Assembly: GCF_026571515.1 (NCBI RefSeq)
Contig: NW_026860185.1
Span: forward strand, 124,001 to 188,000
Direction of reading: 5' to 3'
DNA: 64,000 nucleotides
Source: Ruditapes philippinarum
Taxonomy: Eukaryota
Shown here: in pieces, positions 193-40,679 of the stretch
Layout: each line of letters opens with the position of its first letter
Position numbering within the stretch: the first letter of the stretch is position 1
Position numbers and translations under genes: made by a program
Notes under the pieces: model-generated
Seen by the model: only the letters and a program-made list of their open reading frames with translations
Told to the model about the DNA's origin: nothing
Databases searched by the model: none

Positions 193-3001
193 TGTTCATA
201 AACGGACAGGTCGGCAAATATGAACAATTCTATAATATCATCTGTTGTAGCTCTACCGGTTCTGTGGTGATCTGAAAGATTAAAATAAATAGATTAAAAG
301 TCCAGTTTGAAAATGTTGATTTAAAGAAATTTTGATCAATTTAAATAATGATTAGAAATATTATTTCACACGCGTCTTAGTGTACAATAAATATTTGTAC
401 TTGTCTTCTGTAAATATATTAAGGTTCATAATGTTTATCTAACGATAGTTAAATGATAAATTTTAAATGTTATAAACTAATATGAAAATGCAATAGGTCA
501 CAGTTTACAGAATATGAAAATAACGCATCATGATGTACAAATAGTTAAGCGATAAAGACTTTAACACAATGCACATGTACTTTTTTGATAATTAAAGAAT
601 TGCCATAAAATTAAAACTTTTGTGGAAAAAATATAAAAAGTCGTTACGAATATGCTTATTGATTATCAAAGTTTGGTATTCATTCGGAATCTACGAACAC
701 AGGTTTGGTAATAAATTTATCGCTTAATTTTAAAAGACAATCTTTTTTACTTGACGGACCTTTATCTTCGTTCAGTTCCCGCTTTACACGATGACTTTTG
801 TGACTTCCGCCTTCAGCATGTATAACCATTCTGTTACTATTATGAGTAAATCTACCATACTACAACAGAAGTACTGCTTGAGATAAGTGATCAACAAGTT
901 TCGAGAAGAATAAGCAATTAAATAAAACGACGAACTATTGTGTAAGAAAACCATAATTTAAAGATAACATTTTTAATCAAAGCACCAGTAAAATGGCGGC
1001 CTACAATGAAATTCGTACTTAAACGTCATTAAAAAAACTAAAGCTACATCAAAATTAGAAGACGTATTACAAATTTTGGGCTGAAGTCCGAAGTCTCTCG
1101 ATGGACAACGAGAACGTCTAAGTTGCCAGATTCGTAAGCTGCAAAGTTCTGAAATAAATAAAATGAAAATGGCTTTAAAAAATGTATATGAAATGAAGAG
1201 CAGCTTCCCGATAATAGAACTATATCTGGTGTTTAAATAAAATAATTCAAATGAATAAATCAACTAATAAATATGGTAATTGTGTGTTGAGTAACACAGC
1301 GAACTAAAACAATAAACAAATTATGATTTGTAACTAATATTCAACACTGCTTTGTGCAGCTCTTGTGAACGTACAAACGCACAATATATATACATTGTAC
1401 ATATTTATTTTTGTTAATATTTTAAAAAGGCTGTTTTTCATTTACATTGTTGATTCACAAAAAGCGATTTGTCTTTCTTTGATTTGGCTTTATTTAAGAC
1501 AGTTTTTCATCAATATACGAGATTTACTAGAAAACAATGTCTTAATGGGTAAAATATTTTCAGGGTAACTAGTTCTTTTACTTTATCTAAGAATAAATAC
1601 AAACGTGATCGCTCAAGGGACACTTATTGCTTTATCTGTTAGTGGCCCATTTCTTTCTACATATAATATTAAAAATCTGGATAAAGAGGTTTGATTTCAT
1701 ACAAATTACGAAAAACCACACACTTGCTCTCCAAACAAAACATGCAAGTATTTAAAATAGAGAAAACAAGAATCCTTAAAGAAAGTCCAAAAGGCAAATT
1801 GAAAATGTTCCAGACTCGGTTTGATTGAACCTGTTCATGGACAATACTGCCAAGTGCAAACTACCGTCCATGCCCCCTAGCACAAGCTTAAGATGAATTC
1901 AACATTTAACCATTTAAAGCCACACAGTTTGTATAACTTGAGAAGAAATCTTCCAATCTTGAAGGAAATGTTGTTAAAGCATCGCTAAACTCATGCGACG
2001 TAAAATTCTTATTTATTATCTCTACTCACATCTCTTTCTTTGTCCTTAAATAGCCCTGAAGGGAGGATTTTCGAGGTGTGAAACAGGTCCTCGCTAAGAA
2101 GTTGAGTTGAAACATCATCCTTTTGTAGAAGCAAGGAAACGTCGTTGTCTTGGAAACTAAACACTACTTCAATTCTAGAGGGAAACTTTCCTCTGCCATG
2201 GAAGTCTACATTTTTTATTGTTATTAAATCTGAAAAAGATCTTTCTTATTTGTATTTTTGCATTCAAGTAAACCAAAAGCCCAGGGCATTTTTACAATAT
2301 ACATTGTAGTTAAATGATCGGCCAAGGGACATAGACTTTATGCTAAAATTAAATTCAAATGCTATTAACTTTACTTCTGTAATTACTAAATACTGTGATG
2401 GCTATTGATAAGAATTATATCATTATAGTTCTAGTTATTTGTTTTAGAAAACAAAAACCCATCTTATATCTGTTTACACGGGGATCAATCAATGTTTGGA
2501 ACAAATCAAAACATAAAACAATAGAAACATGTGTTACAACATAGGTAGTTAAATATCATCTTTTCATAAAATAATAATGACCAGAACTATATTACAAAAT
2601 AAAATTACATACAATGTTACATTTTTTGCTGATACAATTTGTAAAAAAAACTTATTTCTTTAACCCGTAGCCTGGACCTGCTGATTTTGTCTTATGGGTT
2701 TTACCCTGCTTTGAATATTTGGAATTCTAGTTGTCTCTTCAAAATTTATGGAATTTTAAAAACAACAACAAAAAGAAACAAAAAACACAAAAAATTGAGT
2801 TACCAACAATACAGAATCTTGTCAGACTGCACGGGTGAGCAGACTGACACGATTTTTAACTGGTGGCCAAGGATTATCAAATTCTGATCCAGTAGGGTCA
2901 TGGTTAATAAGATTTTACTTACAAGATTCATTTTCAGCCGGAATAAACGCACTGCTTCGCACGAGATAAATTATAACTAATTGAAAGAATAAAGTTTCCA
3001 T
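193..3001 (-). CDS. ADAM/ADAMTS-like (M12B) paralog C, 5' part only (signal peptide, prodomain, start of protease-like domain); continues off the left edge
   Basis: Exons 3001-2923, 2229-2030, 1148-1071, 859-760 and 271-193, all GT-AG with phases matching paralogs A and B. Translation: METLFFQLVIIYLVRSSAFIP.. / ..FPSRIEVVFSFQDNDVSLLLQKD.. / NFAAYESGNLDVLVVHRE.. / YGRF..HRVKRE.. / DIIELFIFADLSVYE. Confidence 0.85.
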
Positions 3002-4054: not shown

Positions 4055-7000
4055 TCAATTCCTGTCAATATCTTTAGGTACCAAATTGACTTGCCACTGA
4101 TCTGCAATATCTTGATATACTTCAGCGGTCACGTCAAGTTCTTCATCCTCCCATCCTCTTTTCTCCACGATAATCGTCTGAGGTCCGGCTATAAATTCCG
4201 CATCACAGCCTTCAGGTACAAACCTTTAACATGTTGGTTCAAATAAAACAATTAATCACAAGTTGGTGTCCAGCTACACATTCCACATTCTGTTAATCGG
4301 GTACACACATTAAAAGATTCAACTAAACCAAAAAAAATTAAAGGTTTCTAATGTCCAGCAAAGAAATCCGTAGCTCAAAAACACTTGCCATAAGGTAAAA
4401 AAGAAGCTTCTTTAGTTTAACGTCAAAATAATTACTTTTTTGTCCTATCAATATATCCTAGCATTTTTTAAAAAAATATTCTTTTCTAAAAATTGTGCAT
4501 TTTAGAAAAATTCATCAATGCCGAATGTACTAAGATTATAAACTTGAAACATCTTATTTTTAAGGAACTGTTCTTGTTTTTAATTGTGAAAGACTTATAA
4601 AATGTATGAAAAAAGTAAATACTTTAGGATCTCAAATACAGAACTGAGTATCATGTCAATTGTCTGGAAATAGGAAGACTAGTATTCTATCTATAATGTT
4701 TTAATATTTACATTGTTTCAATAGTGACTGTATCTTTACAACATTCAGATTCCTCTGTACACGACTCAGTCTCGTTAAACGCCGGAAGACCACCTGGACC
4801 GGAGCAACTTGTACACTTATCGTCACAACCACAACCACCACAACACCCACAACCTGCGTGATAAGCAATTGTCTGATATTTTAATAAGTGTTTTATCAGA
4901 GCAAACTTTGAATTATAGCTTGAAAATAAAATTAAATGCATTGCACAATTCGATAAATACCTTAATTTTCATAAAGTTTCTGACACTAAGTATTTATTTG
5001 TACACGAAAGCGGAAAATGAAATAGAAAATTATATTCAAAGAGAAACGGACATAAAATCAGAACATTTCTAGCAGAAAACACCACTTTTGAGTATTTTCT
5101 TATGATTGAAGGGAGATAACCAAAATATTAAAAAGGGAACTTCTCATTTCATAAGGTAAACGTTTGAAATATATTGGACACTTTTATTACATTATATACG
5201 GTATGTAAAATTGGGCATGTATATATACGAACAAAATAAAATCCTCGAATTTGGTCTCTTAAGATAGATACCTGGTAGATCAAATTCCACAAAGCCCGTC
5301 TTTATTACACAATCGGGGTTCGGTTTTTTCGTAGATGACGCCGGCTGAGTTGTCGTCTGCAATTCTGATTTTGGGGATGACGTAGAAGAAGCTGTTGTTG
5401 GAGATGTTGTCTTTCAGGTGGAAACAAAAAATAATGTTGCTATTAAAATGTCTTAAAAAGGACTGCGTGCACTTTTTCTTACTCTTAAAATGTATCTTAA
5501 CCGAGTCCTTACATTGTGTACCATTGTGATATTTGTTTGAAAGTAAATAGTTTGAAATGAGGCATTTATATACGTTACTTAAATATATTTAATCATACAT
5601 TATATGTATTAATTTTCAAATTTTATCCAGCCAACTCGAAATTTAACAAAATCCATAATTTCAAATACATACTCACCGTGGATGTTGAAGTTGAAGATGC
5701 GTTAGAAGACGAAAAGAATAACATAGCTATTTCAAAATCTGTAGTAGTAGAACTTGTAGTGCTGCTTGTCGAACTCGTCGATGTGGAACTGATATTCAAA
5801 CCAGACGCTGCAAAACTAACAACTGCTGAACATACTCCAAACCTACAAATCGGCTGACAGAAATTTTTTTTTATTGAAACTTCATCGAAGCATCATAAAC
5901 AAAATTTTCAGCAACACAAAAGTTGAACGGTCAAGATTGATGTTATTAATTAATCTGTTACTATTTAAATCTATTAACTTATAACAATCTTATTAAATAT
6001 TTATTTATTTATTTATTTACATTCAAGTAAAGCAATGATAATCTTTATAAAATTCATATTGTTTCAGGCCCGTACGTCATTTATAAACAATGAGTTTGTT
6101 GAAATATCATAATTTTTTTTTGTATGCGTACATTATCCTGACTTCTGCTTGAATCGCATGGTGTAAATTGTGGTACAGTAAACGGTGAACATGTGCCTGA
6201 ATCAGTACATCCTTGCGTTGAGCTGTAACAGTCTACTTTATTTCCTTGACTGCCATCCTGATAGGTAGAAAGAAAGAACGTATAATGTTATGCATCAAAG
6301 GTACACCATACTTAAGGTTTATTTACTCCAAGATTATGAAGCCTTTGACTTAGATTTAAATAAGATAGCTCTATTTATATATTCTATGAAGCTTTTGCGA
6401 CCAGAGTTATTCTACTTGGTGGATAAAAAAGGTAAAATTATTATTGTTCTGATAGTTCCAGCATCAAGAAAAGAAATTTACGATCGACAAACTATTTTAA
6501 AGAACAACAACATTTAATTTTCGAACGATTAATCTTTACATGATACCAAAAGCGAAATTAGAAAGTGTCTGGGAATGTATAATATATCTTTCCACGTACA
6601 CAAAATGTCGATCCAGCTTGATAACGGAGCACACATTGTTCGTTCAATGTAAGGAATTCGCTGATATATGAGGATTCATCAAATGCTTGAAAGTCAAAGG
6701 TGGCGTCCTGTATTTTAAGGCAGCTAAGATCCATCCCTCCGTCACTTTATATAGAAAAGATATGTGTTTGTAAATTACCTTCAAGTTGGGCAAGTTTAAA
6801 TTTTTGTGCTTCACATATAAACTTTTAAAACAAATGAAAAATTACGCTGGTTACTTTTTACAAATGCAGTTTATGCAACAATATACATGTATGACATATT
6901 CCAGTTTGATGGATTTACATCGCTTTCAATTAATTTAAAATGAGATGCTTGACAAAACGTTATTATAAAAGAACTTACAAGGCATTTTTGAAATTGTTAA

Positions 7001-10000
7001 TGCTGCATTCAGAGAACTTCCATCGGTTGCCTTGTTTTGAAGAATGTGTAACTGGGCCATATGCTGGTGACATAATAAACTGATCAATGCTGCTACAATC
7101 GTTACCTTCACCATCAAAGGGGACCGACAAACTAAAATATTGATTGGAACCTTTATATGCCACTAAAGTTTAACTCATGTCGATTGTGGAACAAGCCTAC
7201 ACCATCTACAATGTTTTTGATGAGTGATAAATTGTAAAGAAGTCCTTAGTGTAAATAATTCAGAAACAGAAATAAAGCATGACACCGGTCTTAAAGAAAG
7301 AAAGAAATTTAATGCATTTTGAATCATTTCAAAGTTAATCATAACTATAACATGAACTGTATTATTACTGTAAATAAAGTTTTCATATTTGAAATTCATC
7401 ATTTAAAGTATTTTAGGTACAATTTCAGAGAAACAATAATGTAAGGCCATACGTTAGAGCGATCCCTTGCGCCATTGTGACCGGAAAATTATCAATTCGG
7501 ACTATCGAAGTTGCCAAATCTGTGCGACTACCGCATATTTTTCCAGTCGAAATAACTGTTATGATAAATACAATAATATAATCAATTCTGTTTATTTTTA
7601 TATGAAATGAATGATAAAGAATACACAACAAGATTACAATAAGTTATACAAAGTATATCCATCGGAAATGTACATGCAGCCTAATTGGTGGTGCGGGATA
7701 CATATCAACATAATTATAGAAGTTTGTTTTGCAAAAAGATACATGTAATTTAGAAATTCGCGATATATAATTTTTCAGACAATATCTTTGTATATTTACG
7801 ATTATATTACTCTTCGAACAGAACAGAAAACCAAAACTACAACTACATAATTTTATTGCATTAAAACAACATGTTCCACAGCAATAAGAACAATAAGAAT
7901 ATGGAAAGTGTAAGTTTGGTAAAAATTACGTAGGCCTTTACCTTGCAAATCTCCTTCAATGTTTAATCTGAAAAAAAAAGAAATATATGAAATAAATTAT
8001 ATGTATTCTAAAAGAAAATATTAAAATGTTAGAATTTATAAGGACACTCAAGAATGACAAAGTTGCTATCTATATAAATAATGAATCTTTATATTCATAC
8101 TAACAACCAAAACAATGCGAAGGCATCTTAGTCCTATACTTTTAATTTATTGAAAACCTTCAAGATCATTTTGTCTAGCTAAATGTTGTATGCATACAAA
8201 CAACAATTAAATGTTTTTTATGCCGCCTGTTTCTTTTTAGAAACACATCGTATATATTTTTGTAATCTGAATACGAACTTGTTGCTGGCTTTCTGAAAAA
8301 ATATGGAAAGGACGGGAGAGAAAGACAACTTTTTACTTTGTTATAGCCACCAGATGATCTGTGATCGGAAATGCAAATCTTGTTATGAGTTTGTCGTAAT
8401 ATGACTGAAGATCACTGACGGCTGCAGACTGTAACCTATTGTTAGAAACGTTGTTTTCGACCCATTTCTGTTGATTCGAATGCTGAAGAAATAAACAGAG
8501 CTAACGTGATCAGAAAGACGACAAAAGTAAAATCGAAAAATAAACAAGATTTTCACACATTGTTATGTATGGTAAATGTTTTATATAATAAACTTTTATT
8601 CAATTTTATGAATAAATCGATAAGATCAAAATTATCATTTCCTTACTCTTGTGAAACACTTGCATATACTTCCCCGCTTTTAGTTTATAGTTAGATGTTT
8701 TCCAATGTTTTGAGCCAGATATTTGTGATGAATTTACAAGCAATGAATGTAAAAGCAAACGAATCATGCCATTACATTTATATATCACATACAACAAAAG
8801 CTTGGTCACTGAGTTACTGCTGTAGTTATCGGTCTTGCAGATCTTACATTGATATAAACATGTATGTGTCGATTTAAAACACCCTCTGGTGTAAGTTTTC
8901 TACACATTTAGAATGTACTGTTAGCTATTGTGTCAGGTTTTACTTGAAATTTTGATAAACACCCACTATAGTAGGTAAATCGTTTATGAATATGGTTGAA
9001 TACATAAGTAAAAGTATATAACGTATATAATGACCCGTGTTTATCAGATCTATTTTGAGAAACATAAAAAGATATTGATCAAAATCCCTGCAGGGTGTCA
9101 TTTATTTGTAATGTCCGTAAAACTTGTTAATACATTTAAGGTGTTGATCTTATCGACCATTTATGTCACGATATTCATAATAATATTATATAATATAATA
9201 AATATGTACCTTCCAATGAATCTTACATTTGACTTAAGTGTATAATTCTAATATGAAATATATGAGCCGCGCCATGACAAAACCAACATAATGGAGAATC
9301 CAGATCAGCCTGCGCATCCGCGCAGTTTGATCAGGTTCCATGCTGTTCGCTGTCAGTTTCTCTACTTATTATAGGGTTTGTAAGCGAACAGCATGGATTC
9401 TGATCAGACTGCGCGGATGCGCAGGCTTGTCTGGATCCATGCTGGTCGCAAACGCATTATGTTGGTTTTGTCACAGCGCGGCTCATATGCATATAAATGC
9501 GTTTTACTTTCATGTTTAATTGTAATTTATCAATAAATGACATCATATAGTTTTGATAATATATGAATGTAACAATATGTTGAAAGTGAGTAATATTATT
9601 ATTCGATGTCCGTCATTGTATTGTAATGTATTGTGTAATGTATTGTATTTCTGAGAATGTTGTAATTTTTATTTTGTGTCAGGTCAAGGGCTTATTAGCC
9701 TAAACCAGACTGTTGTTGTTTACATGTGGATTTTGAAATAAAATTCTTCTTCTTATGACCAAGAAATGTGGTAAAATCGGTGTTAAACACAGAAATTCAA
9801 ACAATGGTTCTTTATTAAGTGGCTGGATAAATTGGAACTTGGGTGTGATTAGAAAAAAACAAAAACAAAATTTTTTTTTATAAGTATCTGCAAGTGTTCT
9901 ATCTTTTTATTTGAGATATTCATTTTTGTTTTGTTTTGCATCTTTGTGCTCTTCATTCTTGATATCTTTTAATTATCTTACCGTAATAGTTTGATATTGT

Positions 10001-16393: not shown

Positions 16394-18206
16394 TTATACC
16401 CCTACCACAATATATGGGTGACTAAATAGATTCGCTTTGTCGCATCCGTTCCGTCCGTCCGCCAGTCGTCGGTCCGTCAGTCCGTCTCCATTATCGTGTC
16501 TGCTTTATAAATCCTATACCAATTAAAGGATTTTCTTCAAACTTGGCTCAAATGTTCACCTCAACAAGGGGATGTGCAGAACCTATGTTGCCCATGTGTC
16601 AGCTCAAGATCAAGGTCACAATTGAAGGTCAAATATCAAACAATCAAATATTAGACAAGTATGTCGTGTCCGCCCTGTAAGTCCTACACTAATCGAAAGA
16701 TTTTCTTCAATCTTGGCTCAAATGTTCACCTTAACAAGGTAATGTGCAGAACCCATGTTGCCCCTTTTGCTGGATTAAGGTCAAGGTCACACTTGAAGGT
16801 CAAAAATTGACTGAAATTTTAACATGTATTTGAATATTTCTAAAACTAGAATAGGTATTTGCTTGAAACTTAAAATATATATGGAGTGTCACATTTAAAT
16901 TTAAATATGCTGGTCAAGTTTCAAGTTATGCCCCTTTTTAAGTCTTCAAATTTACATACACTCAAATATTAGACAATATGTCGTGTCCGCTCTATAAATC
17001 CTATACTAATGGAAGAACTTTTTTCAAACTTCACTCAAATGCTCACCTCAACAAGGTAATGTGCAGAACCCATGTTACCTTTGTGCCGGCTTAAGGTCAA
17101 GGTCACACTTGAAGGTCAAAAATTGACTTACAACATGTTCTTAAATTTTTACGTGTACATGTACTTGAATATATTTGAAACTGGCACAGGTATTTGCTTG
17201 AAACTTAAAAGATATGTGAAGTGTCACAAGTAAGATATGCAGGTCAAGTTTCATAACTCTGTATTGCATTTTGACAAAGTTATGTTCCTTTTTTAAGTCT
17301 TTAAATTAACTACAATCAATACTAGACAATATGTCGTGTCCGCTCTATAAATTCTATACTGATGGAAGGATTTTCTTCAAACTTGACTCGAATGTTCACC
17401 CAAACTGGGCAATGTGCAGAACCGATCTTACCCTTGTGACAGCTTAAGGTCAAGGCCACACTTGAAGGTCAGAAATTGAAACAGAAAATGTTCTGAAATC
17501 TTAACATGTACTTGAATATTTCTAAAACTAGAACAGATAATCATTTGAAACTTCAAATATATATGAAGTGTCGCAAGTAAGATATGCAGGTCAAGTTTCA
17601 TAACTAAAAAAGTGTAGGGGATAACTTTGTATTGTATTTTGACAAAGTTAAGTTTTAAATTTATTTACTACAATATTTCTTAAACCAGAACAGATATTTA
17701 CTTGAAACTTAAAATTTATATGAATGGTTACAAGCAAGCTCAGATGATGAACATTCTACAATTTCATTAAATTACGACACAAGTTATGCCCCTTTTAGGC
17801 TTAAAAAATGTTCTGATATAACCATTAATAGTTAAATGTTTCTGAAACTAAAACATATATTCACTTGAAACTATATAATATATGAAGGGTCACAAGTAAG
17901 CTCAGTATGCAAAGTTTTTCAACTCTGACATAATTAACATAATTATGCTATTTTCTTAACTTCACTGCTTTTGTTTGTTTTAGTACATTGGGAAAATGAA
18001 AGGTTATTTGTAACTGTTTCGAACATGATTTGACAATATATATTTATACTATTACCAGTACAATTTGTCTTTTTTCACCAGGGATAATTTCTTTTTATGT
18101 ATATGTATTTGTGCCACTAAAGTTATTCCCTTAACCACCTTTCCAAGTCATCTTCTGTCAAGGACATTGGTGGGGGTATGACTTGCATCCAGCAATAGTT
18201 CTAGTT
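16394..18206 (+). mobile_element. Helentron-associated (HINE / pearl-like) non-autonomous element with an internal tandem array
   Basis: 5' TTATACCCC, (CCGT)n microsatellite, several long internal tandem repeats (AAGGTCAAGGTCACACTTGAAGGTCA units), subterminal inverted GGGGGTAT and a 3' end CTAGTT. Confidence 0.7.
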
Positions 18207-18875: not shown

Positions 18876-19185
18876 TTACTTCTTCTCCACCAGTTCTACC
18901 TTCCATTTACCGGAATCATTTTTGAACACTTCTGCAGTTATTTCTTTTTTATTTTTATCTTCAGGCATTGTGATAATTCTTCTTGGTCCAGATTCGTACT
19001 GCGAGGCACAACTCTCGTGAACATATCTGATAAAACATTAAATAACATGATTTCAAGTTCATTTTGCTATATCTTTGGTAAATATGCATTGCATTGATAA
19101 CAAAGCTTTGGTTTTTGTAGCAGACCAAGGGTCAATTACGTTACCTTTTTTCGGGTTACAACAAAAAAAATTTTTTTTCTTTTTC

Positions 19186-19243
<58 letters not shown>

Positions 19244-19528
19244 GTTGTTGTATTGATCATAAAAGTTCACTGAACGTACATATGCTAATAAGACTTTAGT
19301 TAATTGAATAGATAAAATTATACTTACGTTGTTGTAACTCGGACTTTCTTGCCAAAACAATGAGCACCTTGCTCACAATCCTTGTTGTTCTTATCACAAC
19401 CTGCACACGTACATCCTGTAATATATATAATTATAATTCGGTATGTTAAATCAGAACTAAATAATTGTCAACATCTGTCACGTTTGTACATAGTACTGAA
19501 GTCCGATCCATTGAGGCAACGGTCAACG

Positions 19529-19607: not shown

Positions 19608-21082
19608 AATAATGAAAGAAACTAAATGAACGTGTATCGCATTCACAACAATTAGAACGACAACTTATGATTCAACAGTCTGAGTGGAATTTAAGTGACA
19701 TGTTTATTACAAAGTACACTTTTTGTTTAAATATTAAAAAGTTAGTAAAGTACAAAATACCTGGTACATCGTAATCTTTAACTTTTGTTTTCAACACACA
19801 TGAAAACGGTTGTGTTGTCGTCTGAAGATCACTGAAAGAAGTCGTAGACTCCGTTGATGATTCTTTACAAAATCCAAACTGACAAGTTAACTGTGAAGAC
19901 AAACATTGTGTTAACTGTTTAAAACCTAGTACCTATGACCTACATATAAAACCAGTATAGAACCCGGTCAACCTGCACATCTGTGAATTCTGACCACATG
20001 CAATAGTCTTGTCCGATTCATATACAAACGTATGTACATGTATATCAATTTACCCGGTAATATTGGAATTTTACGTAATCATTACAGCTCGTTACGCGGA
20101 GACACACACCAAAATAATTCAAAACATCATCGTATTTCTACAAAAGAAACTACTTCCTAGGGATCACCCTTCTTCTATATTTTGAAATTATTCGACATAG
20201 AAGAAAAGAAACAAGAGCTGTCCGTAAGACAGCGCGCTCGACTTTTTTATTGCTTACCAATAAAAAAAGTTTTTGCAGTAAAAGGCAATACAAGAATCTC
20301 TGTATTTTTAAAGTGAACAATGGCCATGAGCATTAAGATATTTAGTGAAGAATTATTTTACTGAATTGTGTGATACCCTTGAACACTGCAGCAAAGTTTG
20401 AAATGTTTAAGTCAAAACATTGACAGTTAAGGGCCATAATTCAAATAAAATCTTTGACAGAATTACCTTCTCCTGGACATGTTTGGGAATCATGATTGTA
20501 AACAAGTATTCCAACTTTCAAATTAATATCTCAAACAGTTCAGTCAAAAAGTGGACTGGTACTAAAAACTTAACCAAGATTCTAAGTCGATAAAAGGCCT
20601 TAATTTTTAAAACAAATCCTTGACAGAGTTACCTTCTCTTGCGTACAGATGGGGGTAATGATGTGAAATAGCATTAAAAGTTTCAAAGCAATATCTCAAA
20701 GGGTTAAGGCAATAAGTGGATTTTACCCATATTCAATGTATTTTCTAAGTCAAAAAGGGGCATAATTCTGTCAAAAACCTTGACAGAGTTATGTCCTCTT
20801 GTCTGTTGATGAAGGTCGTGATGGTAAACAAGTATGGTCAGTTTCAAAGCAATACCTCCAATGGTTTTGAAATAAAGTGAGGTGGTACAAAAAACTTAAC
20901 CAAGCTCAATACACTTTCTAAGTCAAAAAAGGGCCATAATTCTGTCAAAAACCTTGACAGAGTTATGTACTCTTGTCTGTAGATGGAGGTTATGATGGTG
21001 AACAAGTATGGTAAGTTTCAAAGTCATACTTGTAATACTTCTGAAATAAAGTGGGGTGGTACGAAAAACTTAACCAAGGTGT

Positions 21083-21114
<32 letters not shown>

Positions 21115-24100
21115 GGCGAGTAGGATAGCTCCCCTTTTCATAGAAAAGTCGAGCTAAAAAGTTGACGCTCATATTATCTAAAGTGTATTAATAAAATTAA
21201 TGAAATAATAAATCAGATGAATAATTAATACAATTATATACGAGGGGAAGTCAGAAAATATCCGGACTTTTGACTCGTTCTCGAAAACCATTCAACATTT
21301 TAAAAAAAAATCTTTCTACTCTTTCTCCACCTACGTCTACGCACCTTTGCCATCTTCGTGGGAGCTTTTGTATTCCCGCTGTGAACCATGACTTTGGGTA
21401 GTGTGTACAGCAGATATCAAAGCCGCCCTGGTCTTATATTTCTTTCCAGCATGCAATTTTTTCAGTTCTGGAAACAAATAAACGTCACAGGGGGGCGAGG
21501 TCTGGGCTATAAGGAGGGTGAGACAACAATTGCCATTTGTAAGAGTTGATAACCTCCACTGTAGCTGCGTCGGTATGGGAGGGGGCGTTATCGTGAAGAA
21601 GGAGGACATTTTTATGTGCTAACCTGGGACGCATTTGCTTCAGCTTTTCTCTGAGATTTTTCAGAATTACCTCTGAGATTTTTCAGAATTACAATTTGTA
21701 CTTCAGAATAGTACTTGGCGGCGACAGTTTGACCTTTTGGCATGAAATGAGTAAGTATCATTCCTCGTGAATCCCAAAAGGCAACAAGCATGACTTTGCC
21801 AGATAAAGGAGACAGCTTAAATTTTTAGGAGGTGGGGAACCAGCTCGTTTCCACAACTGAGCTTTTGTCTCAGGTTCGGAATAATGACTCCAGTGATAAT
21901 GCGGTTCAAAAACTTATCTCCTTCACGATTAAAACGACTTAAATGTTCTTTTGCATTGGTTACTCTGGTTACCGTTTGATCTGCGGACAGCTGTCTAGGC
22001 ACCCACCTGGCACTTACCTTGATCATGCCTAGGTGTTCGTGTAAAATATTGTGTGCTGATGCCTTACCGATGCTAAACTTGTTTGCTACCTCCTCCAAAG
22101 TTACTCGACGATTTTGTTGACAAAAGCTTTAACATTTGCTACCATTGTTGGGGTCACCGCCTCAGCTGGCCGCCAGTCCTAGGCCTGTAACAAGTACTTG
22201 TTCTTCCTTCACGAAACTGAGAAACCCAGTTGTAGAAGGTTGAACGTGATGCTCATTTATCAGAAAATCTTTTTAAGCCTCTGAAATATGTGGCAGGGCT
22301 TTTCACCTTCTGCAACCAGAAACTTTATTAAAGAGCATTGTTCCTCTAACAAAGAGTCCATGATAGACGAAACACCTATCATATATCACAGGGCAAAATA
22401 CTGTGTATACACAACTATCATTGAAAATAAACTGACCACGTTATTGGCGAATGAATGTAGTTTTCACCAATATATAATGTGTGTATATAGCTGCACGTAG
22501 AAAGAGAGGAGCATGAAAAGTCCGGATATTTTCTGACCGTCCCTCGTATAACGCTGTCTGTCTTACCCCCTTTGTATTCCCACATGATGTCCTATGTGAC
22601 ACAGTAAATGGTTCACACACACCATTGACTAGGCAGCCCTGTGTTGCACTGTAGCAATCAACCATATTTTGATTGCTATTATCCTAGAAATATAACACTT
22701 CAATGCGCATGTGTAATAATTAAAGACACATGCGCACTGTAAATAAAATCATTATAATAAATTCATCATATTTAACAGTGTGTTCAAACTTGGTTTCTGT
22801 TTTGACAACAAATTTGAAACTTCTTCAAAATTTATCGGTCCAATGAGCATTAGAGGAATACTTGTATATACATATATTGGTACAACCGGTACCGTCGGCC
22901 TAGTGGTTAAGGCGTCAGCCTTCGGATTGTGAGGTCGAAGGTCCGAGACCCACGTGGAGCGTTAATTGAGGAATTAATGTTTCTCGTCGAACTCATTCTG
23001 AAATGGCCGCTTCGTGAGCAGCAAGGTAGTTAAAATGAATGTTTACCATTTTCTATCCGCCTGGCGCCTGGCATAGTGGTAGCAGTTGGGGTAAAAGGTA
23101 TACAAGCAAAAGGTGTCTTATAAGTCAGAAATGGCTGGCCCTTTCAGTAGGGGAGACACTATAATAAACAAACCCTTTACCCTTTTTCCTTTTATATTCT
23201 TAAATATTTACAGTTTTATATTAGTTTTAAATAAGAATTAAAAACCTGTAGAAAGAACGGTTTAATAAAACATTATATTCAAAATATTACATACGCAAAA
23301 TGTAGCCCCACTTTGGTAACGTATTTCGCATTGTTGATCAGCAGATATTTCTTCACTCATAAAAGGGGCATTGTTAAACTTTTCCCAGTCGTAATACTTA
23401 TCCTCTGTTTGAAGACAACTTAGGTCTAATCCGCCATTACTTTAAAAATAAAAATGCTAAAATCGTAACAGAAAAGTACCTTAAATATTCATAAATAATG
23501 TATCTATGATTTACGAACAGTAAATGTATGCTAGATTATTAGCATAGTTTCCGTGTGTTTATTATTAATGAATTGTTTCAGTAAAAGTTTACATACATGT
23601 AGAACAAATTAGATTTTGAAATCCAGCACAACCTTTACTTAAATATCTTACCTATATAAAGATGTTTCATTTAAAACCTTATATTTATTTTAAACAATAT
23701 GGTCAAGGGAACTTTATTTTTGCTAAAACTAAATATTTTTGTCTTATTAATAAAAAAATTTGATAGATGCTAAATATTTATGCGGATCGCTTCCATTCTT
23801 TCGACCACAGATTAAATTGCAGCAAATATTTAGTTTTGGTCGCACACTTGTGTATAATTTGGCTTGAAAAGATTAATCAGTTATGAAACTATTGTGTCAG
23901 TACCAAACCATTGAAATAGCAAATCTAATTTTTTTTTTTTTTTTCATATTTGGCTAAAACACCTTCAACATTATTTAAATTTCAAACGAATCAACTTTTA
24001 ATCGGTAAATAAAACAAATTGACATATTTGGCCATGAAGTAAATAACTAACGTAACGTAACAATCCAAGAATTCGACTTTTTTCATTATACGTACATCGC

Positions 24101-27100
24101 AGCTTGGAACTTTTCTACGCTACATGTTGAGAATAACCATCTGTTCCCTTGTATTGATGGGTCTGTCACAACACTATAATCACTGGACATGATGTATTGA
24201 TCATTAATTTCACAACTGTTTGATGAACCATCGAAATTTACCCCGAATCTTAACCAAAAAACAAAAGATGTCTGTTATGCAACCAAAGTTTTATTTCCCA
24301 TCGTATATTTCTCAATATCATTTAACTTTATTTTTACAATAAAAGATTTCACTGTCTATATTCGCGAGAATGTGAAAGTCTTAGCTGCCATATACTTATT
24401 CGTTTGTTTCAGTTTGAATTACTTTAAGATTTCTTGCCATGTTGCTCGTCTTGGCAATATATTGCTCAGCTTCGGTGTTGCTATTGCACAGCTCCTGCGA
24501 TAGTTTCACATTCCTGCGTTATGGATATACACAGTGGGTATACCATTTTTCTGCACAAGAATATCTGTAAACTGTTTTTCAGAATAAAAAAGAGTAGCAC
24601 GATGGTCTCAGCCGTATATTCTTTTCTGGCTTTAACATTACGCCTATAGTTTAAGATGTATGTAAAAAAAGAAACGTCAGTTTTATATCTAGGGAGAATA
24701 ATTACTATGGCTGTTGTATCTTACTGAAATACGTAAATGTACAGTATATCTATTAGTTCGATAAATGTGTTTGTGGTTTCGCCTGAGGTTTCTCGTCGGG
24801 ATCTGCTAATGAATTGATTTTTAACATGATTATTTGTCTGCGGTTAGCGAGGTTATATATTTGCTATTACTGTGTCATATAAACTTTACTGACACTTTTG
24901 ACAGGTTAATTTGGCTTTCGTTTGTAACTTTGATATTAATGTAACATTATAACTTAGATTTCATTTGTGACATAATCTTTTTTTTCCGTCTGATAATATG
25001 TCCTGGATGTCGTTTATGACATGAAAAGTTCGACTGCTGTAATATGATAACATCTATCTATCTATCTCTGGATACTGCCAACCCCTCTTACGAGTGTTAA
25101 AGGCAGGAATTTAGTGCACGTCGGATTGTTAGTAAAAGGTAAAAAGAAAAGCTAAAAAAGAAAAGTCCAAACATTGACATGCTTGGAAGGCGAGACTGAA
25201 AATGTATTCTAGTCATGGTTAAAATGTTAATAGTGAAACAAGATGATAAGAGATAAAATAGTTTAAAAACACTGGGAGTAAGACTAGTACTGCAAACCCA
25301 CCACTGCCTGTTTGAACTGACTCAGGTTAGGCAGGGTGGCAATGTTACTAGGAAGTTTATTCCATAGTATAATGCTATGAGGGAAGAAAGAGTACTTATG
25401 GTAGTCAGAGGATACCTGTAATTGGCGTAGAGATAAGGGATGCATATGTCTGGTTAATCTATGTGGGGTTTGAACATAAGTTGGGAGATTAATTGCAACT
25501 AGGTTGTGGTATATCTTAAAACATTATCAGTCTACAGTCCAATCTGCGATGTTCAAGGGGTCGCCAGCCCAGTTCTTCCTGCATGGCTGTGACACTAGAG
25601 TGAGGGGAGTAATCCCTTTTAACCCATCTTATTGCGCGTCTCTGGATCATCTCAACTTTGTCAATATTGGTTTTAGTGTAAGGAGACCAAATAGTTGAGG
25701 CATATTCAACCTGTGGGCGGACCAGGGACTTGTATGCTAGTTCTTTCACTTTCTCATTTTTTAGTAATGACATTTCTTTTAATAAAGCCAAGGGATCTGT
25801 TTGCATTGGAAGTTATTCGAGATATATGTGTATTGAATTTAAGGTCAGCAGATAGATCTAGTCCGAGATATTTAGCATTTGTAACAGACTCTAGGACTTG
25901 GCCATGGAGCATATATTTGTGTTTAATTATGGTTTTATTTTTGGTGATAATGACAATATTTTCTGGACATAATAATAAGTTAATCATTACCTTTGTTATC
26001 AAATGTATCATTATATATCATGCATCGTCATGATAACATATAAGACATATTTACTTTTTCAAAATTTAGTAATGTGTAAGTAAAATTGGTTACGTCCGAG
26101 CTATCGCTTGAGACATGGCAACTTGAAAGTGGTCAATACGAACAATAGATGCCGCCACATTTGCTGTCTCCCCACACATGCTGCCAGCTGTCATTACTAT
26201 ATTGTATAAAATAGTTAATTAGAGCTAGTTTGTCAATTCTATAAGGATCATAAGCCTATGGGGCAATACATACAAAGCTTATAAATCCACACATAAAAAT
26301 GATCATGAAAAGATAGTACGTACAATTGAGTATAACATAATTTATACTAAGTTTATGTACTTCGGAAGGCTGAAACTCAAATTTAACCAAAGAAAAATAT
26401 ATAAAAGAAAAACACTTCAAAATAAACATATGAATGACTTGAAAACGTGCATTTGTACCCCAAATTACAGGCGATCTTTATTGCAATCAGTACAAAAATG
26501 TCAACTTACTACATGTAGCTATAACCTTAGTGCACGAATTCTCTGACAATTATTGTTAATAAACAACAGAACAGAATGTGTAGTTATAAAACTGTATGGG
26601 GAGAATTGCTATTGACGATATTTAGTCCTACTCACACATTCATAAAATTTAACGACATAGATTATTAAAAATATGCTTGAAGTAAATAAAAGTATTAAAT
26701 ACATGTTGGCATGTTGTGGAAGCGTAAGTTTGGCAAAAGTTTGATATGTGTAAATCATAAAGATTTTACCTTGGTCTCCGTCTGCCATTTGTAACCTAAA
26801 AACAGTTCATTATTTAATTTGATTAATTTATTTATGGTAAAATGATTATAAAATTGTACTGCTTAAGTTACATTAAATAAATATGTAAAAAATATTTTGC
26901 AGTCGGCCTAAAAACCAAGCATTATACAGTTTCATTAACCTTTTTAACAGAATTGTTGTAAATTTCATCAAACATTGTTCATAAATTAGGATTATAAACG
27001 GAAAACCCCACGGTAACACTAAAGTTCGTATACGAATTTTAACATGCAAATGAAGACTATAATCAGTTCGTGTATGTGCTACGTCACGGTGTTATAGTTG

Positions 27101-30100
27101 CTATACAGAACACAGCAAATATGAGATTTTCACGTGCAAACACACTTTAACCGTTTTAGTTTCACGGTACACTTGTAATCATCTGATAAAAATATTAAAT
27201 TTCTATGAAAACATCCGTTACAATGCGGAAATATACCGTTATATTAGGACTGCTACTTATCGCCATGTTTGTTGATTTAATATTGATGTACGGGCGGAGT
27301 TTCTTATGCAAATAGAAATTGTACTTCCGATTTCGCCACAATGAGGTCGCATATATGTATGCTTATAAAACGCAATTTGGTTGTCTTGACACCATAATAA
27401 AGATCTGGAGTCGATATGAATCCCAATGTATTAATGAAATGTCTCTATTTCTGTTTGAATGAAATTTATTTAATGTAGCTTTAAATAAGCCTGGCTTATT
27501 TGTGTGTGCATATTTGTCTGCGTATTTGTTCCGAAGCGTTAAGACGTCATTTATGAGCATGGAGTTACTTGAGATAAACAACCTCAAACTAAAATTATTA
27601 ATTTCTTAAATAACTCTCATTTTGGGAGTTGTCATATTTTTTTTTTTTTTTTTGATACTAACATTTTCTAGAACATCAATTCTGTAGACTATATCTTTTT
27701 TATGATGACAGCATCTCGTTTTGTTATCATGTAGTTTTGTAGTTTTCAAAATAAAAGTATCAAAATTCTGACGTAAGGCTCATTTCAAATCAGATTTTGA
27801 AGACAAATAAGAGAAGAAACGTTAGGATTGCCTCTAAAGCACATAAATACTATAATTACCTTAGTCAAAGCTGCTTAACTCTTCTCTAACAAAAAAATAG
27901 TTAAGTTTTGAGATTTTATCCAGTATATTTTTAAATTGAACTGTTCTACTCACTTTGTTAAAGCCATCACGTGATCAGCGTAAGGAAAAGCGAATTTTGT
28001 ATACAGTTTGTTGTAATATGCCTGGAAATCGGTAACAGCTGATGATTGTAATTCATCTCCAGACATATTATCCTCTACCCATTTCTGTTGCTTCGAATTC
28101 TGTGAATGTATTACAAATGTTATTTATAGTAAACGATTTTTTGTGCGTGTTGTTTGACTGACCCGTATGTTTTCTTCTTCCCCTTTTAAAGACAAGTAAT
28201 GGCGTATTATGTTGGAACACAATTTTAATTAATAAAATGACTTAGAGAGCGTCTTTTGCACCATTATTTAAGGTGATCATTGCACTGGAATTTATACTGT
28301 CAGGACTACAGGAAGAAGTTGAATAAATAACATATCAAGAACTATGTGACACTCAAATTCATAACAATCTTCTGACATGTAGCTATCATGGCATTATACA
28401 CATCCTCGTGCCTTTTCTCATAATGGCGTTAGCAACCAAGTATTCACCTCTAAACAACCTAGATCGTGATAAATAATGTGCCCAGTTAGCTCAAGAGTTG
28501 ACCATTGGACTGTGAATCGGGGATTACGGTGCAGGTCAATTTCATTGTGATTGATTATGATATCCATTCTATGGTCATTTGCACTGTACCTCTGATCTGG
28601 TATGTACAAAAATTATCAATTTCTTGCGAAAATGAAGGCAGCTTTTACTAGTAAACTGCTTGACAGCCTGCACAGGAACGATGCGTGCGGTGGCTGAAAT
28701 GTGCTGTAAATTCAATGTGGCTTAATGCCTACCACTATAAATAATTTCAAAATATAATGCACTTACAGTAATGATTTGGTATTGTTGAAAGTACACTCTC
28801 AACGGCATGCTCGTTCCATATTCACCTAAATTTTCAAAGATAGCATCCACCTGGAGAAAAAACATTTTATATTATAAGCTTCAAATATATCGATTTGATA
28901 AACACTTGACAAGTATATGTGATTTTATGTAAAATATGACAATGAACTGTACTGTTTACGCCAATAAACTATTCTGTCTGTCTGTCGTATGAAAAGAATA
29001 TTCGATTTGTTTATGTTAATGACTGTACTTAACTTACTGTAGTAGATGTAGTAGTGATAATAATAATAATAATAATAATATCTTTATTCAAACAAGGTAT
29101 TAACATACGAAGACATACCATCGTAGAAAACAAATAACATATCTTAATTTTAAAATTAATGCGGCCTTCTAAACAATATATAGGAACACACACACAATAC
29201 ATCATAAAACAATAACAAGTATTCCATAAGATTCGGTCATATAACATTTTTGACAAATGCTAGTGCTTTATAAGTTCTAGCAGTAAATTTTAATACATAA
29301 ATGTTTTAGCTTTTGTATACACATTTTACCTAATATATTTCAAACTATTTCTAATTCCCACCATACATGTTTTATGTACAAGTATCTAAAACTCCACTGA
29401 GGTTTAAAAGACTATAAACATAACATTTGAATTTCTTACATAAATGAGCTGGGGCACTTTAAACAGACATATATGCAAAGATAGTTAATAAATATGCTTT
29501 GAAATAAATTGAAAATCGTATTTTTATGCTTGTCTTAGCCTGATTTGAGTGAAAAGCGTTTAAACGCATTTCTTTTTGGGTGATTTTTTTCACAATTGGA
29601 AAAATTATTCTGGAAAAAACAACGTGCGCGAATGATCTGAAATTTTGCACAAAGATTAGTGGTCTTAACCTACATCAAATGGTACATTTATCTGGAAAAA
29701 ATATTTTCAGTCCCACCATGTCAAGAAACCTCAGTAGAGTCCCTTTAATGTGTATATTTCATGAAATATATACAAAAACAAACAACTTTCAAAATATACC
29801 GATTTTCTTTTAATACAACTAAACAAAACGAAAATCAATATTATGAAAGATACTACGTGTCTGAAATGATAGCTTTCTATTGAATATATAATTTACATAA
29901 AAGGAGGAACAGACATGAAACTAGAAATGTCACTGTTAAATTGCATTGATCTAGTACCTGTGTTTGTCTCTCGTAGACTTTACTAGAAACGATCATCTTT
30001 CACCTTATGATATCCCGTGCAAGTATAATTTAGTCAAAAACCAATTTTGTTTCAAGATCCTGATAAAATTATTCTATTATACTAATATTTTTTTCTTTCG

Positions 30101-30671
30101 AAAACATAAGTCTAAGTATTATTCTGTATAAAAATGTAATTTGAAATTAATACATACTTCTTTGACAACGCATGGTAGCCACTTTTTGATGTAGGGATAC
30201 ACTTTCGATGAGGCCATCATCTCGTTTTCAAAACTAGAAAAACAAAATAAATGAAAGAAGTCCCGAAAGAAGGAGAATATAAATGTATTTATATGCACAT
30301 GCCTGTAACAATATGCAACTGATCTCAAAAGAAAATCTTCTAGAATTATAAATATAGGAAAGTATTTCAAAGACGGACATTGGCTAATTTTTGTTTCGTT
30401 ATTTCTTAAATACATGTACAGTTTGTTTTTACTTATATAGGCGATTAAACATTTATAAACAAACAAACAAACAAATGAAAAGACATGATTTCAGTATGTT
30501 TTAGAACACTTACTGTTGATGAACAGATAAGTCCGTAAACAAAAATAACTCTATGACGTCATTTGGAGTCGATACATCTCGGCGAACTCTGTGCTTTACT
30601 TAGAAGATAGAAAGTGCAAAAAATGAGAATAATAGAAAATAGAAACAAACAATTATCAATGTATTCCTTTG

Positions 30672-30705: not shown

Positions 30706-32852
30706 GACTTTATTTAACGAGAGAACTCATTTGAATAAACATATCAATCTTCCATGAGGCCCTCATATGAACGGGTATGGTTAATTCATGATACTGCAGC
30801 ATAGTTCAAACAGCTATGCTTGCTTTTATACTGTAATGCTGCAACTCTGTGCAGAACTTATATAGCTGTTGTATAACTATCAAATGTATATCTTTTTTCG
30901 TTTGATAAAAATCATAATTTCATTGCTAACCGAAGTAAAAATTACTCAATGAGTGAAGAAGACGTCCCATAAATTAAGGGATAGGGTTGTTCTAGAAAAA
31001 TCTTAGAGTCGGTTATGCTATTTTTTTAGTTTGTCTGTTTAAGACATGGCAGAGTTCATTATTTCTAATGCCCCCAGCACCGGTTTATCTAGTCAATCTA
31101 GTCACAAACATACCATATATTTCTTCTGGTCTGACGCTGTGATTCGTGTGACTTCCATCTACCGACTGAATCACCATGTTTCTATTGTCTTGTTTAAATC
31201 TTCCGTACTGTAGATATATTGCCGGAGTGAGATTAAATTCTTATTACACATACATTTACATGAAAAAGTATTTAATTAAAAATTAATGTCATTGAACTTA
31301 TACAATAGATAGCAAAGAACTGTTAAAGGAAACACATAATATATACATTTGTAGATTTGCTTCGCAAACAATGTCAAAATAATGACAGATCTGGATTAAT
31401 GCTTTCAGCCAACAACTCATCTTAACTAAAACAATGAATTTCTAGATATGGGACGTTCAGTAAATAATTCTGTCTCATCTAAAGTCAGAGCTAATATCAT
31501 TATTCGATTGTTCAGTTACGATAAAACAAACGCTATGAATACTTTTGATTATGTACGTTGTATCATTTTGTCGATAAACATAAATCATAACTTACAAACT
31601 TTGGTTGTGCATTTTCAGTTTCACGATGAACAATCAAAACATTAGAATCGCCGGAATCATAAGCTGCAAACTCCTGTGGTGAGAAAATCTTGTTTATTTT
31701 TTATTGATAAATACGGTGTCCCGTTAGTACCATGGCGACACACACATTACTCAAAACAACGAAAACAGGAAATAAGGAACAAAATAACAAAACCACGATA
31801 GTGTAAAGTTGAAGGGACGATGATGAAAAGTTTTAAAAGGAAACAGAATGATTATGATTTCCTTTTAGATCTTACATGCAGCAACTTTAATTATCTATAC
31901 AGCTGTATATACTAAAGTACTAAAATTTAAAATGCGGACAATAATTATATTTCTTAGCTTACTTTACTTTTCCTTTGTGTGAACACGTCAGACGGAAGGA
32001 AACTTGAGGCATCAAACACTGATTGTGTTAGAAGACCAGTTGTTTCGTCATCCTTGTCTAGTCTCAAATAAATGTCCTTGTTATCGTAACTTAGCAACAA
32101 CTCTATCACTTTCGGAAACTGTCCGTAACCGTCATACTCAACATTCTCTATTGTCACTTTGACTGTTTTAAATACATATATATATATATGAATGATGAAC
32201 AAAAAAAACAAGATGACAAATTTATAGGATTCAACAATGATAAGCATTAATTAATTTATTCTTATAGTTTGATATATTTCTAAGATTGATCATTTGCTTA
32301 CAATTTTTGAATACTAGTATCTATATTTAGCACTACTTTACATGAAAATCTGGAAACAAAGTGATCCCTCGGAAGCATTAATCACAACAAAATTACTTGA
32401 AAATTGCAGACTCGGTTTTATCAAGTCTGTACATGAGGGACAATGAATAAGTGTAACAACCCTCACGCCCCCTAGCACCGGCTTGAGTGGTACTCAATTC
32501 TCAACAGTTAATAGTGCTGGCATCAATGATCCCGAAGGACCAGAAAAATATAACAACACACGGGGCAACTTTTTACAGCTGCCACACAGCACTTGAAGAC
32601 GAATTATTTTGTTACAATTTAGTAATCTGCATGTCATGCAAATGGTTTGTTAACGGACCATCAGGAATCACCCCTTTAAAGGTAAAGTAATTATAATATA
32701 AAGCAGAAGAACAATATCTGAGTTACCTCTAAATTTCTTATACAAATAAAACAGTAGATAACAAAATAATGCTTTAACTTACAATCTGCCGACACAAAGA
32801 TCCAATTTGAAACTAAAACAAACAGTACGCATGATCTAAGACACTCAACCAT
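18876..32852 (-). CDS. Secreted ADAM/ADAMTS-like (M12B reprolysin) pseudoprotease paralog B, 16 exons, about 581 aa
   Basis: Exons 32852-32783, 32162-31963, 31673-31596, 31207-31114, 30598-30514, 30233-30158, 28850-28767, 28099-27954, 26795-26770, 26196-26094, 24248-24096, 23439-23295, 22683-22567, 19890-19761, 19415-19328 and 19026-18876. All GT-AG, 1746 nt in frame to TAA, same phases as A and many identical exon lengths (70, 200, 78, 84, 146, 26, 103, 153, 145). Signal peptide [26 protein letters not shown] furin site, Met-turn YIMSS. Confidence 0.88.
19189..19613. repeat. Trinucleotide microsatellites (ATT)n and (AAT)n(GAT)n on either side of the Cys-rich exon of paralog B
   Basis: Directly visible near 19189-19243 and 19529-19613. 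Confidence 0.95.
20209..21160 (-). mobile_element. HINE-type element (TTTTTAGCTCGACT family)
   Basis: Minus-strand 5' TTTTTAGCTCGACT, (GGCGTC)n microsatellite, internal tandem repeats, and 3' AGTCGAGCGCGCTGTC..GACAGCTCTTGTT hairpin end. The same ends recur at 46769-47316. Confidence 0.75.
21241..22546 (-). mobile_element. Full-length but defective mariner transposon
   Basis: TA-flanked TIRs of about 30 bp (CGAGGG..GTCAGAAAATATCCGGACTTT). Transposase motifs [19 protein letters not shown] and YSPDLAP/CDVYLF are spread over several frames by frameshifts and deletions; 22-bp internal tandem duplication near 21648-21691. Confidence 0.92.
22886..23173 (+). mobile_element. tRNA-derived SINE
   Basis: A-box-like GGCCTAGTGGTTAAGG and B-box-like GGTCCGAGACCC, followed by a non-tRNA body and an A-rich tail (ATAATAAACAAACC). 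Confidence 0.65.
25051..25932 (-). mobile_element. 5'-truncated LINE (CR1/L2-group) 3' end
   Basis: [28 protein letters not shown], then after a frameshift [28 protein letters not shown]; a 3' UTR ending in an (AGAT)n tail. Confidence 0.85.
28480..28735 (+). mobile_element. Degenerate tRNA-derived SINE (Meta-domain-like)
   Basis: Shares TTGCGAAA..GACAG(C/A)CTGCACAGGAACGATGCG..GGTGGCTGAA with the minus-strand copy at 42610-42835; tRNA-like head AGTTAGCTCAAG..GGACTGTGAA. Confidence 0.5.
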
Positions 32853-39869: not shown

Positions 39870-40679
39870 ATAGTTCATTGTAGATGTAGTCATATAAATT
39901 AATTATTTAATTGGATATTTCTAGGTCATTATTTATCTAATTTTGAATGTACGCAATTTAACAAAGTGCATATTATAAAAGTGATACAGGAGTGAACGTC
40001 ACAATAAAATAATTTTATCTATTATTAGTGATTAGATTAAAAAGAAAGTACGAACTAAAAGAAAGTGCAAACTACTATCTAAAAGATATTTTTTATATTT
40101 TTCCTTAATTCAGGTTATTGTCAAAAGTTTTGTTAAAATTGTAAGTATAAGCGAAGCTCATAAACTACAAGAGAAATGTTCAGAAGAGAAGCGAGAATTT
40201 GTGTTTTCGGTGACATTGGTAATGGTCAGTCGGATTAATGCAATAATACATGACTAATAGAGCTCGTTTTGTGAAATCTAGAAAAAGATATGATGGTGAT
40301 TGTAATACATTAAAGATGTCTGAAATTAGTTATATCAGAAGTCATGGATTTTCTAAATCATTTTAATATCATATCCGACTAAGTTAATAAAGTTTACTTC
40401 CAACAAATATTATTCTCTAAAGATTTTGAAAACTGTTATTTGTATCGTACAAAGTTTGTTTGTGATATGAAATTAGTGAATGGCTACCGAGGCAATTATC
40501 TATAACGTAGGCAATATTTAGTCATTCAAGAGACATTTATCCATTAGGTATACATCCAATGTAGGTGTATGAATCTTTGAAAGTGGTTTACCTGATCATT
40601 AGAATTATGGCTAAGCTTAAGAAATCATGAATTAGTTAATATGATAACCATGTTTAGAAATACCGTGAAATTTAAATAA

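Follow-up and report, generated by a model that had tools for sequence, protein, structure and literature searches.

The window analyzed here, a 64,000-nucleotide stretch of the Ruditapes philippinarum genome (1.4 Gb) that corresponds to positions 124001-188000 of contig C8672, contains three minus-strand tandem paralogs, designated A, B and C, which were recognized by all-against-all comparison of stop-free stretches together with tblastx (Table 1). The subject of this text is paralog B of this clam and the inactivated zinc motif of its protease-like domain, read together with the same motif in the sister copies. The remainder of paralog C lies below the start of the window, at 117-124 kb of contig C8672, and its protein is identical to the database entry RefSeq XP_060606868.1 ("uncharacterized protein LOC132759163"). 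A fourth copy, D (XP_060556994.1), is positioned on a separate contig, C10466.

The exon limits of B were placed from coordinates together with the phase of the splice sites. In A and B, all 13 exons compared are flanked by AG/GT and agree in phase, and the same was true of C for 12 of the 13. Exon 1 ends with one base of a split codon before GTAAGT (T+TC, giving Phe), the seven split codons that were read in B and its last three exons are all open, and the 26-nt micro-exon has homologues in both A and C. In exon P1, the proportions of nonsynonymous (pN) and synonymous (pS) sites that differ between A and B are 0.31 and 0.61, respectively. The predicted product probably starts with a signal peptide and a propeptide that carries a furin-like RVRR, followed in this order by a protease-like domain of the M12B (ADAMTS) type, a Cys-rich disintegrin-like region, a linker rich in Ser and Thr, a Cys knob and a small C-terminal module; both secretion and furin cleavage of B are predicted from its sequence. 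The Pfam family Pep_M12B_propep was not detected on the propeptide exons. In addition, the convertase-type site is shifted in B, where SVRP stands in P3 and RVRR one exon later, in M1.

Table 1. Positions of paralogs A, B and C and of their exons in the window
Feature	Position	Strand	Basis or remark
Paralog B	32852 down to 18876	-	16 coding exons
B exon 1: start codon and hydrophobic, signal-peptide-like stretch	32783..32852	-	best hydrophobic ATG-to-donor candidate
B propeptide exon P1	31963..32162	-	AG/GT sites and phase as in A (14393-14194) and C (2229-2030)
B propeptide exon P2	31596..31673	-	splice-site phase
B propeptide exon P3	31114..31207	-	SVRP where A has HVRR and C has RVKR
B exon M1: furin-like RVRR and start of protease-like domain	30514..30598	-	
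B exon M1b	30158..30233	-	3 codons fewer than in A and C, frame intact
B exon M2	28767..28850	-	
B exon Ea (...ADHVMALT)	27954..28099	-	spliced contig X4 record 8; counterpart in A (8482-8337), none in C
B micro-exon, 26 nt	26770..26795	-	joints 26196|26770 and 26795|27954
B exon Eb: edge strand SIVRIDHF and first half of former zinc motif, QAIAR	26094..26196	-	
B intron Eb-Ec	24249..26093	-	contains repeat 25072-25949, high RNA depth
B exon Ec: second motif half (T)FGVNFDG, then Met-turn QYIMS, conserved FSTCS	24096..24248	-	
B exon Ed: start of disintegrin-like (ADAMTS_CR_2-like) region	23295..23439	-	contig joints; Pfam ADAMTS_CR_2 E 0.047; inside the hhalign alignment
B exon Ee: Cys-rich continuation	22567..22683	-	contig joints, hhalign
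B Ser/Thr-rich linker exon (DCVLK...DVPG)	19761..19890	-	boundaries by homology with the RefSeq model of C
B Cys-knob exon (GCTCAGC...KKVRVTT)	19328..19415	-	
B last coding exon, ends in stop	18876..19026	-	
Paralog A	~14393 down to ~4079	-	
A exon Eb (SIVRIDNFPVTMAQGIAL)	7453..7555	-	
A exon Ec ((T)LSVPFDG...)	6979..7131	-	
Paralog C, part in the window: exons P1, P2, P3, M1	195..2229	-	

Transcripts of B were sought over 5801 letters in four runs, of which X1 and X4 are contig runs from different studies and X21 and X23 consist of raw RNA reads. One contig, record 8 of X4 (1035 nt, depth 14), joins six exons of B (28099-27954, 26795-26770, 26196-26094, 24248-24096, 23439-23295 and 22683 to about 22567), and the joints 24248|26094, 23439|24096 and 26196|26770 are found in contigs of X1 and X4. 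Each of the stretches skipped is bounded by CT..AC, or GT..AG when read on the minus strand. Because the spliced contigs join exactly at 24096 and 26196, these two positions, between which the original prediction had placed the informative part of B, are true exon ends. A processed retrocopy was considered as the origin of the spliced contigs and was set aside, as each of Eb and Ec is present once in the genome at 100% identity.

The introns of B also contain repeats, at 25072-25949 and 26862-27443, with very high RNA or contig depth (up to 3346 in X4), and the reads over them often continue into dissimilar sequence. These repeats are probably transcribed copies of transposable elements.

On the minus strand of B, both the six-frame reading and the exon tables show that exon Eb ends in AMSQAIAR and exon Ec starts with FGVNFDG, and that the codon split over the intron between them, AC|A, encodes Thr. 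Paralog A reads SIVRIDNFPVTMAQGIAL-T-LSVPFDG across the same junction, and the motifs as a whole are QAIARTFGVNFDG in B, QGIALTLSVPFDG in A, QGIALTFNVPLDG in C and KGIAFSLGAKLDE in D. It had been claimed that A and B share Gln at the position of the first zinc-ligand histidine (His1), Ile-Ala at positions 3-4, Thr after the second (His2) and Phe at the third (His3), with SIVRID.F upstream, and both readings confirm this for the two copies. The matching exons of C show the dead pattern with Q, I-A, T and V, but the Phe at His3 does not extend to this copy, which has Leu instead (...SIIRIDSFTISMAQGIAL-T-FNVPLDG).

The correspondence between this pattern and a zinc motif was established by profile comparison with active proteases. 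In hhalign, a dead set composed of the C and D proteins, the exons of A and B as separate rows and three fragments aligned with 12 active relatives with a probability of 99.15 and an E value of 3.4e-19 over 183 columns; the alignment pairs QGIALTFNVPLDG with HELGHSLSAPHDG and extends through the disintegrin-like module. Q-x-I-A-x-T-x-x-V-x-[FL]-D-G aligns on H-E-L-G-H-S-L-S-A-x-H-D-G of active mollusc ADAMTS-like proteases, and neither QAIARTFGVNFD of B nor QGIALTLSVPFD of A, column-aligned to HELGHSLSAPHD, agrees with the M12B zinc consensus HExxHxxGxxHD. The former His1 is occupied by Gln in A, B and C and by Lys in D. The other former catalytic positions vary among the copies; in the order B, A, C and D, the residues are A/G/G/G in place of Glu, R/L/L/F in place of His2 and F/F/L/L in place of His3. 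Around the motif, the Met-turn (DQYIMS in B, DQFIMS in A) aligns with the invariant M417 of the active set, and all four copies retain the disulfide cysteines C368, C409 and C438 of that set, a comparison that covers the C-terminal third of the domain. The aligned part contains 19 columns without variation among the 12 active proteins. Of these, 12 are kept in B and C (the three Cys, D-G, the Asn before the second Cys, the Met of the Met-turn, and N.W.FS.CS) and seven are lost in both, six of the seven being zinc-motif positions (H, E, L, G, H and H). The scaffold thus appears to be retained and the catalytic chemistry lost. As the protease-like domain of B has neither metal ligands nor a general base, we infer that it would be unable to hydrolyze peptides by the metzincin mechanism.

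Assignment to the ADAMTS type was approached by family searches run exon by exon or with database proteins. Single exons give weak Pfam matches (Reprolysin_2, E 0.046 for B and 0.011 for A), and ADAMTS_CR_2 had no match on the C protein at E<=0.1. When 1.84 billion representatives were searched with an Ec profile built from A, B and C, 187 proteins were retrieved at E<=0.001; the long matches that were checked carry Reprolysin and ADAMTS_CR_2 domains and the motif HELGHxLxAxHDG, and among the 150 matches listed, 143 align at the third ligand, with His in 126 of the 143. For the C protein itself, no PDB sequence was matched at E<=1. The best solved relatives of the active mollusc proteins, including P0003 from Bradybaena, are the vertebrate ADAMTS-1, -5 and -4 (2jih, 2rjp, 2rjq, 3q2g; E 6.6e-15 to 8.9e-10), over the catalytic and disintegrin-like parts. 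In the ESM Atlas, residues 1-190 of the C protein fall with a mollusc "ADAMTS 16-like" cluster (feature score 0.96; template modeling score, TM, 0.81) and also match vertebrate ADAMTS clusters (TM 0.70-0.76), the structure match covering residues 2-190. An AlphaFold2 model of the partial C protein P0001, from a 13-row alignment (A4), had a mean predicted local distance difference test score of 46 and a predicted TM score of 0.25 and was left out of the analysis of fold or pocket. In Pfam, TSP_1 had no match on the exon stretches of B or A, on the C protein, or on the active relatives P0003 and P0020. Since no TSP1 repeat was detected, the family is regarded as ADAMTS-type in its protease and disintegrin-like parts but not as canonical ADAMTS.

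Selection on the paralogs was estimated from Nei-Gojobori counts summed over exons, and p-distances are reported since the Jukes-Cantor-corrected rate of synonymous substitution (dS) was undefined for many exons. Over 474 codons, A and B differ with pN 0.316 and pS 0.747, a pN/pS of 0.42 (bootstrap 0.37-0.49); the corresponding ratios are 0.35 for A-C and 0.38 for B-C. The per-exon comparison of A and B that the original prediction had proposed gives, over the 83 codons of Eb and Ec, pN 0.30 against a saturated pS of 0.77. The p-ratio overstates omega, and the corrected A-B ratio is bounded at 0.09-0.25 in the 527 of 1000 bootstrap replicates where it is defined. Consistent with this, 23 of the 37 invariant amino-acid columns of Eb and Ec use differing codons among the three copies (the Arg of SIVRID, for example, is encoded by CGT, CGA and CGG). 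In the exons of B, the transcript contigs depart from the reference at 13 listed positions; eight of these variants are synonymous and five nonsynonymous, with 81% of sites nonsynonymous (P 0.001). Together with the intact reading over 16 exons and the spliced transcripts, these results show that B is a constrained gene and not a decaying pseudogene, and here the earlier expectation of purifying selection has held.

A further part of that expectation, that the dead site is specially constrained and its remodeled cleft may form a new ligand pocket, has fared differently. A, B and C do retain SIVRID.F, the Met-turn QYIMS and the motif residues Q, I, A, T, V, D and G, while their codons for these residues differ synonymously, and similar motifs recur in two fragments: P0159, a 51-aa ENA fragment that reads SIVRIDNFPVSLAQGIALT and was the sole match, from two candidates, of a word-index search with the Eb profile, and P0002, a 55-aa Logan fragment that reads FSITFDG.... 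Both fragments are probably from other species, because searches of the clam's own genome did not find them. However, the full-codon motif columns are not more often invariant in A, B and C than the other columns of Eb and Ec (6/12 versus 31/71, Fisher P 0.76), and of the four positions once catalytic, three are variable (A/G, R/L/F and F/L). The D-G pair, the Met-turn and the Cys residues are invariant in the active enzymes too, which marks them as ancestral scaffold residues, and in ADAM22, as described in a 2024 review (PMC11266112), the partner binds the domain surface rather than the pseudo-site. The hydrophobic replacements would fit a filled-in metal site as well as a pocket. Special constraint on the dead site, or a new ligand pocket, is therefore not supported, and we consider it unlikely that the remodeled cleft is itself functional.

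An equally tentative elaboration, which we would not expect to hold, is that the clade comprises venerid-specific, secreted, ADAMTS-derived decoys. The SIVRID.F edge strand and the Met-turn would then form a peptide groove that traps substrates or inhibitors of the active ADAMTS-like paralogs, and the mucin-like stalk with the new Cys-knob and C-terminal module would present this groove, for example in mucus, shell matrix or immunity.

The distribution of the derived residues bears on how often the motif was lost. The I-A pair is common to A, B, C and D, and Q, T and V are common to A, B and C. A tree built from 57 family members over about 200 columns unites C and D in a clade with a support of 100 and a stem of 2.5 changes per column. 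In a tree of exon Ec (49 rows, 48 columns), one side of a branch with a Shimodaira-Hasegawa-like approximate likelihood-ratio support of 88 is made up of A, B, C, D and P0002, a grouping that is suggestive rather than strong. Gln at His1 alone is weak evidence for a single loss because it recurs in dead vertebrate ADAMs (tables of PMC11266112); the case for a single loss is therefore argued from the shared I-A, T and V and from both trees. One loss before the duplications, as the original prediction had proposed, is supported as the best reading of these sequences. Three active paralogs in the clam's own genome, L004, L006 and L007 (contigs C7400, C11143 and C15826), carry AHELGH, an exon break and LG..HDG, and the break lies at or beside the same motif position as in the dead copies; as active paralogs are split likewise, the exon break within the zinc motif must be old.

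That A and B instead lost the motif independently, or that the dead pattern spread among the tandem copies by gene conversion, seems very unlikely. Recurrence of the individual substitutions speaks for independent losses: in Table 2 of PMC11266112, Gln stands at His1 in ADAM2, 11, 18, 22, 23 and 32 and in unc-71, Ala at the Gly in ADAM22, 23 and 32, Leu at His2 in ADAM2, 18 and 32, and a bulky hydrophobic or aromatic residue at His3. Separate dead variants also exist elsewhere in the 57-member tree, namely the Lymnaea protein P0042 (RELGQSLSADYDG; RELGQ...Y), which stands beside an active sister, and P0143; four more rows labeled as dead were left uncounted, the motif window being displaced by indels. 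Against these points stand the combination of I-A in four copies with Q, T and V in three, the single group recovered in both trees (though the Ec tree has the few columns and the support given above), and the presence of the same I-A core in D, on another contig. Recent gene conversion as the source of the shared pattern was rejected, since pS is saturated on Eb and Ec (0.77 for A-B, 0.67 for A-C and 0.79 for B-C).

The age of the B lineage can be gauged to some extent from Mercenaria. The protein XP_053374951.1 (P0151) contains the C-terminal half only and is uninformative on the dead site; in the last exon, its identities are 30/47 with B, 25 with C and 15 with A, which only hints that the B lineage is older than the split of the two genera.

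Taken together, we favor, with a probability of roughly 80%, the reading that B is an intact, transcribed Manila clam gene for a probably secreted pseudoprotease. According to this reading, HELGHxLxAxHDG would have turned into the QAIARTFGVNFDG now seen in the protease-like domain of B, the motif would have been lost in a single event before the small clade of the tandem A, B and C and of D diversified, and purifying selection would thereafter have acted on the whole protein and not on the old site in particular. Constraint on the whole protein without catalysis points to a non-catalytic binding or scaffolding role, presumably in the extracellular space. Homology to an enzyme without its catalytic residues, expression and purifying selection, by which pseudoenzymes are generally recognized, are all found in B, with the inactivity predicted from the residues.

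Several observations weigh against this reading. That X1 and X4 are RNA runs is a guess, and they were taken as RNA because of their spliced joints; among the raw RNA runs, expression is low in X21 (exon depth of about 1, with 4% of the run read), and no reads from B exons were found in X23. Synonymous sites are saturated, so that the ratio of nonsynonymous to synonymous rates (dN/dS) can only be bounded, pairwise pN/pS averages both lineages over a long time, and record 8 of X4 has 17 differences in four exons, of which 13 are among those listed. The Pfam Reprolysin score on the C protein is 15 bits, below the cut-off of 20.8. The protein search returned no database protein for B, even though the expected length of about 590 aa falls within the lengths searched, and the public annotation may either miss paralog B or treat it as non-coding. 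In addition, two of the four clade members look damaged. A counterpart of exon Ea had no match in C within a 1080-bp N-free interval (C8672 122188-123267; L011 8188-9267), and the loss of Ea breaks the frame of C, the RefSeq model XP_060606868.1 starting at the Met of the micro-exon; for D, read on contig C10466 at 17301-47300, the 19 kb upstream of Eb yielded neither propeptide exons nor exons for the N-terminal part of the protease-like domain. A and B thus look like the only complete copies. The remaining alternative, that B inherited the dead pattern from a dead ancestor and has since decayed as a pseudogene without selection, could draw on the truncated or broken appearance of C and D, the lack of a B protein record and the low expression in X21 with none in X23, but it is largely refuted, and most improbable, in view of the 16 open exons with canonical splice sites and intact split codons, the spliced transcripts in two studies, the eight synonymous and five nonsynonymous variants listed, and saturated synonymous sites against a pN of 0.32, since a neutral copy of such age would carry stops and frameshifts.

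The preferred reading, that of a retained pseudoprotease, has close parallels among known proteins. The inactive ADAMs (ADAM2, 11, 18, 22, 23 and 32, and unc-71 of C. elegans) belong to the same clan and family, M12B. Like the clam copies, they keep the protease-like fold and the Met-turn while the zinc ligands are gone, the pattern of substitutions is strikingly similar, and they are retained under selection for binding roles. They differ in being anchored as type I membrane proteins that have EGF, transmembrane and cytosolic parts, whereas none of these parts was seen in B and C of the clam, which appear to end in a small module that looks soluble; moreover, the nearest active kin of the clam copies are of the ADAMTS type, and the loss in the clam is independent and lineage-specific.

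The active mollusc ADAMTS-like proteases (P0003, P0020, L004, L006 and L007) share with the dead copies the exon break in the motif, the Met-turn, the three Cys and N.W.FS.CS, and probably also a disintegrin-like ADAMTS_CR_2 region after the domain. They keep HELGHxLxAxHDG, which the dead clade does not, and it is the dead clade that is set apart by its long stem and by a linker, Cys-knob and C-terminal module of its own. Vertebrate ADAMTS-1, -4 and -5 differ from the clam copies in that they are catalytically active and carry TSP1 repeats and a spacer. ADAMTSL proteins are secreted, non-catalytic relatives of ADAMTS that are not known to have any protease-like domain, whereas the clam copies retain this domain with a dead site.

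Inactive ADAM-type metzincins are textbook examples of pseudoenzymes, and the clam clade repeats their route of inactivation, with His1 replaced by Gln, Gly by Ala, His2 and His3 by hydrophobic residues, and the scaffold kept; it may be regarded as a natural replicate for the tolerance of the metzincin fold to zinc loss. Among the M12 entries in the tables of PMC11266112 there are only ADAMs and unc-71, with no dead member that has an ADAMTS-type protease-like domain, and literature searches on inactive ADAMTS of bivalves and on ADAMTS of Ruditapes philippinarum brought up no specific case. For the annotation of the genome, the result amounts to a correction, as B is intact over its 16 exons while the protein search returned no record of it. 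Otherwise, such an outcome is to be expected in a protease family that is large and lineage-expanded, and B adds one more to the ordinary dead enzymes that are retained.

Internally repeated blocks were observed between A and B (16426-17755, where part of 16494-17000 recurs at 17001-17746) and in the large intron of B (20410-21187). A short repeat family at 9226-9533, 40635-40994 and 45819-46102 gives matches on both strands and palindrome-like self-matches. On the plus strand, 43631-48953 and 57984-63809 hold two tandem paralogs of AMP-binding enzymes (acyl-CoA-synthetase type), whose exon-like stretches pair at 49-75% identity and match Pfam PF00501 in four of the five stretches scanned.

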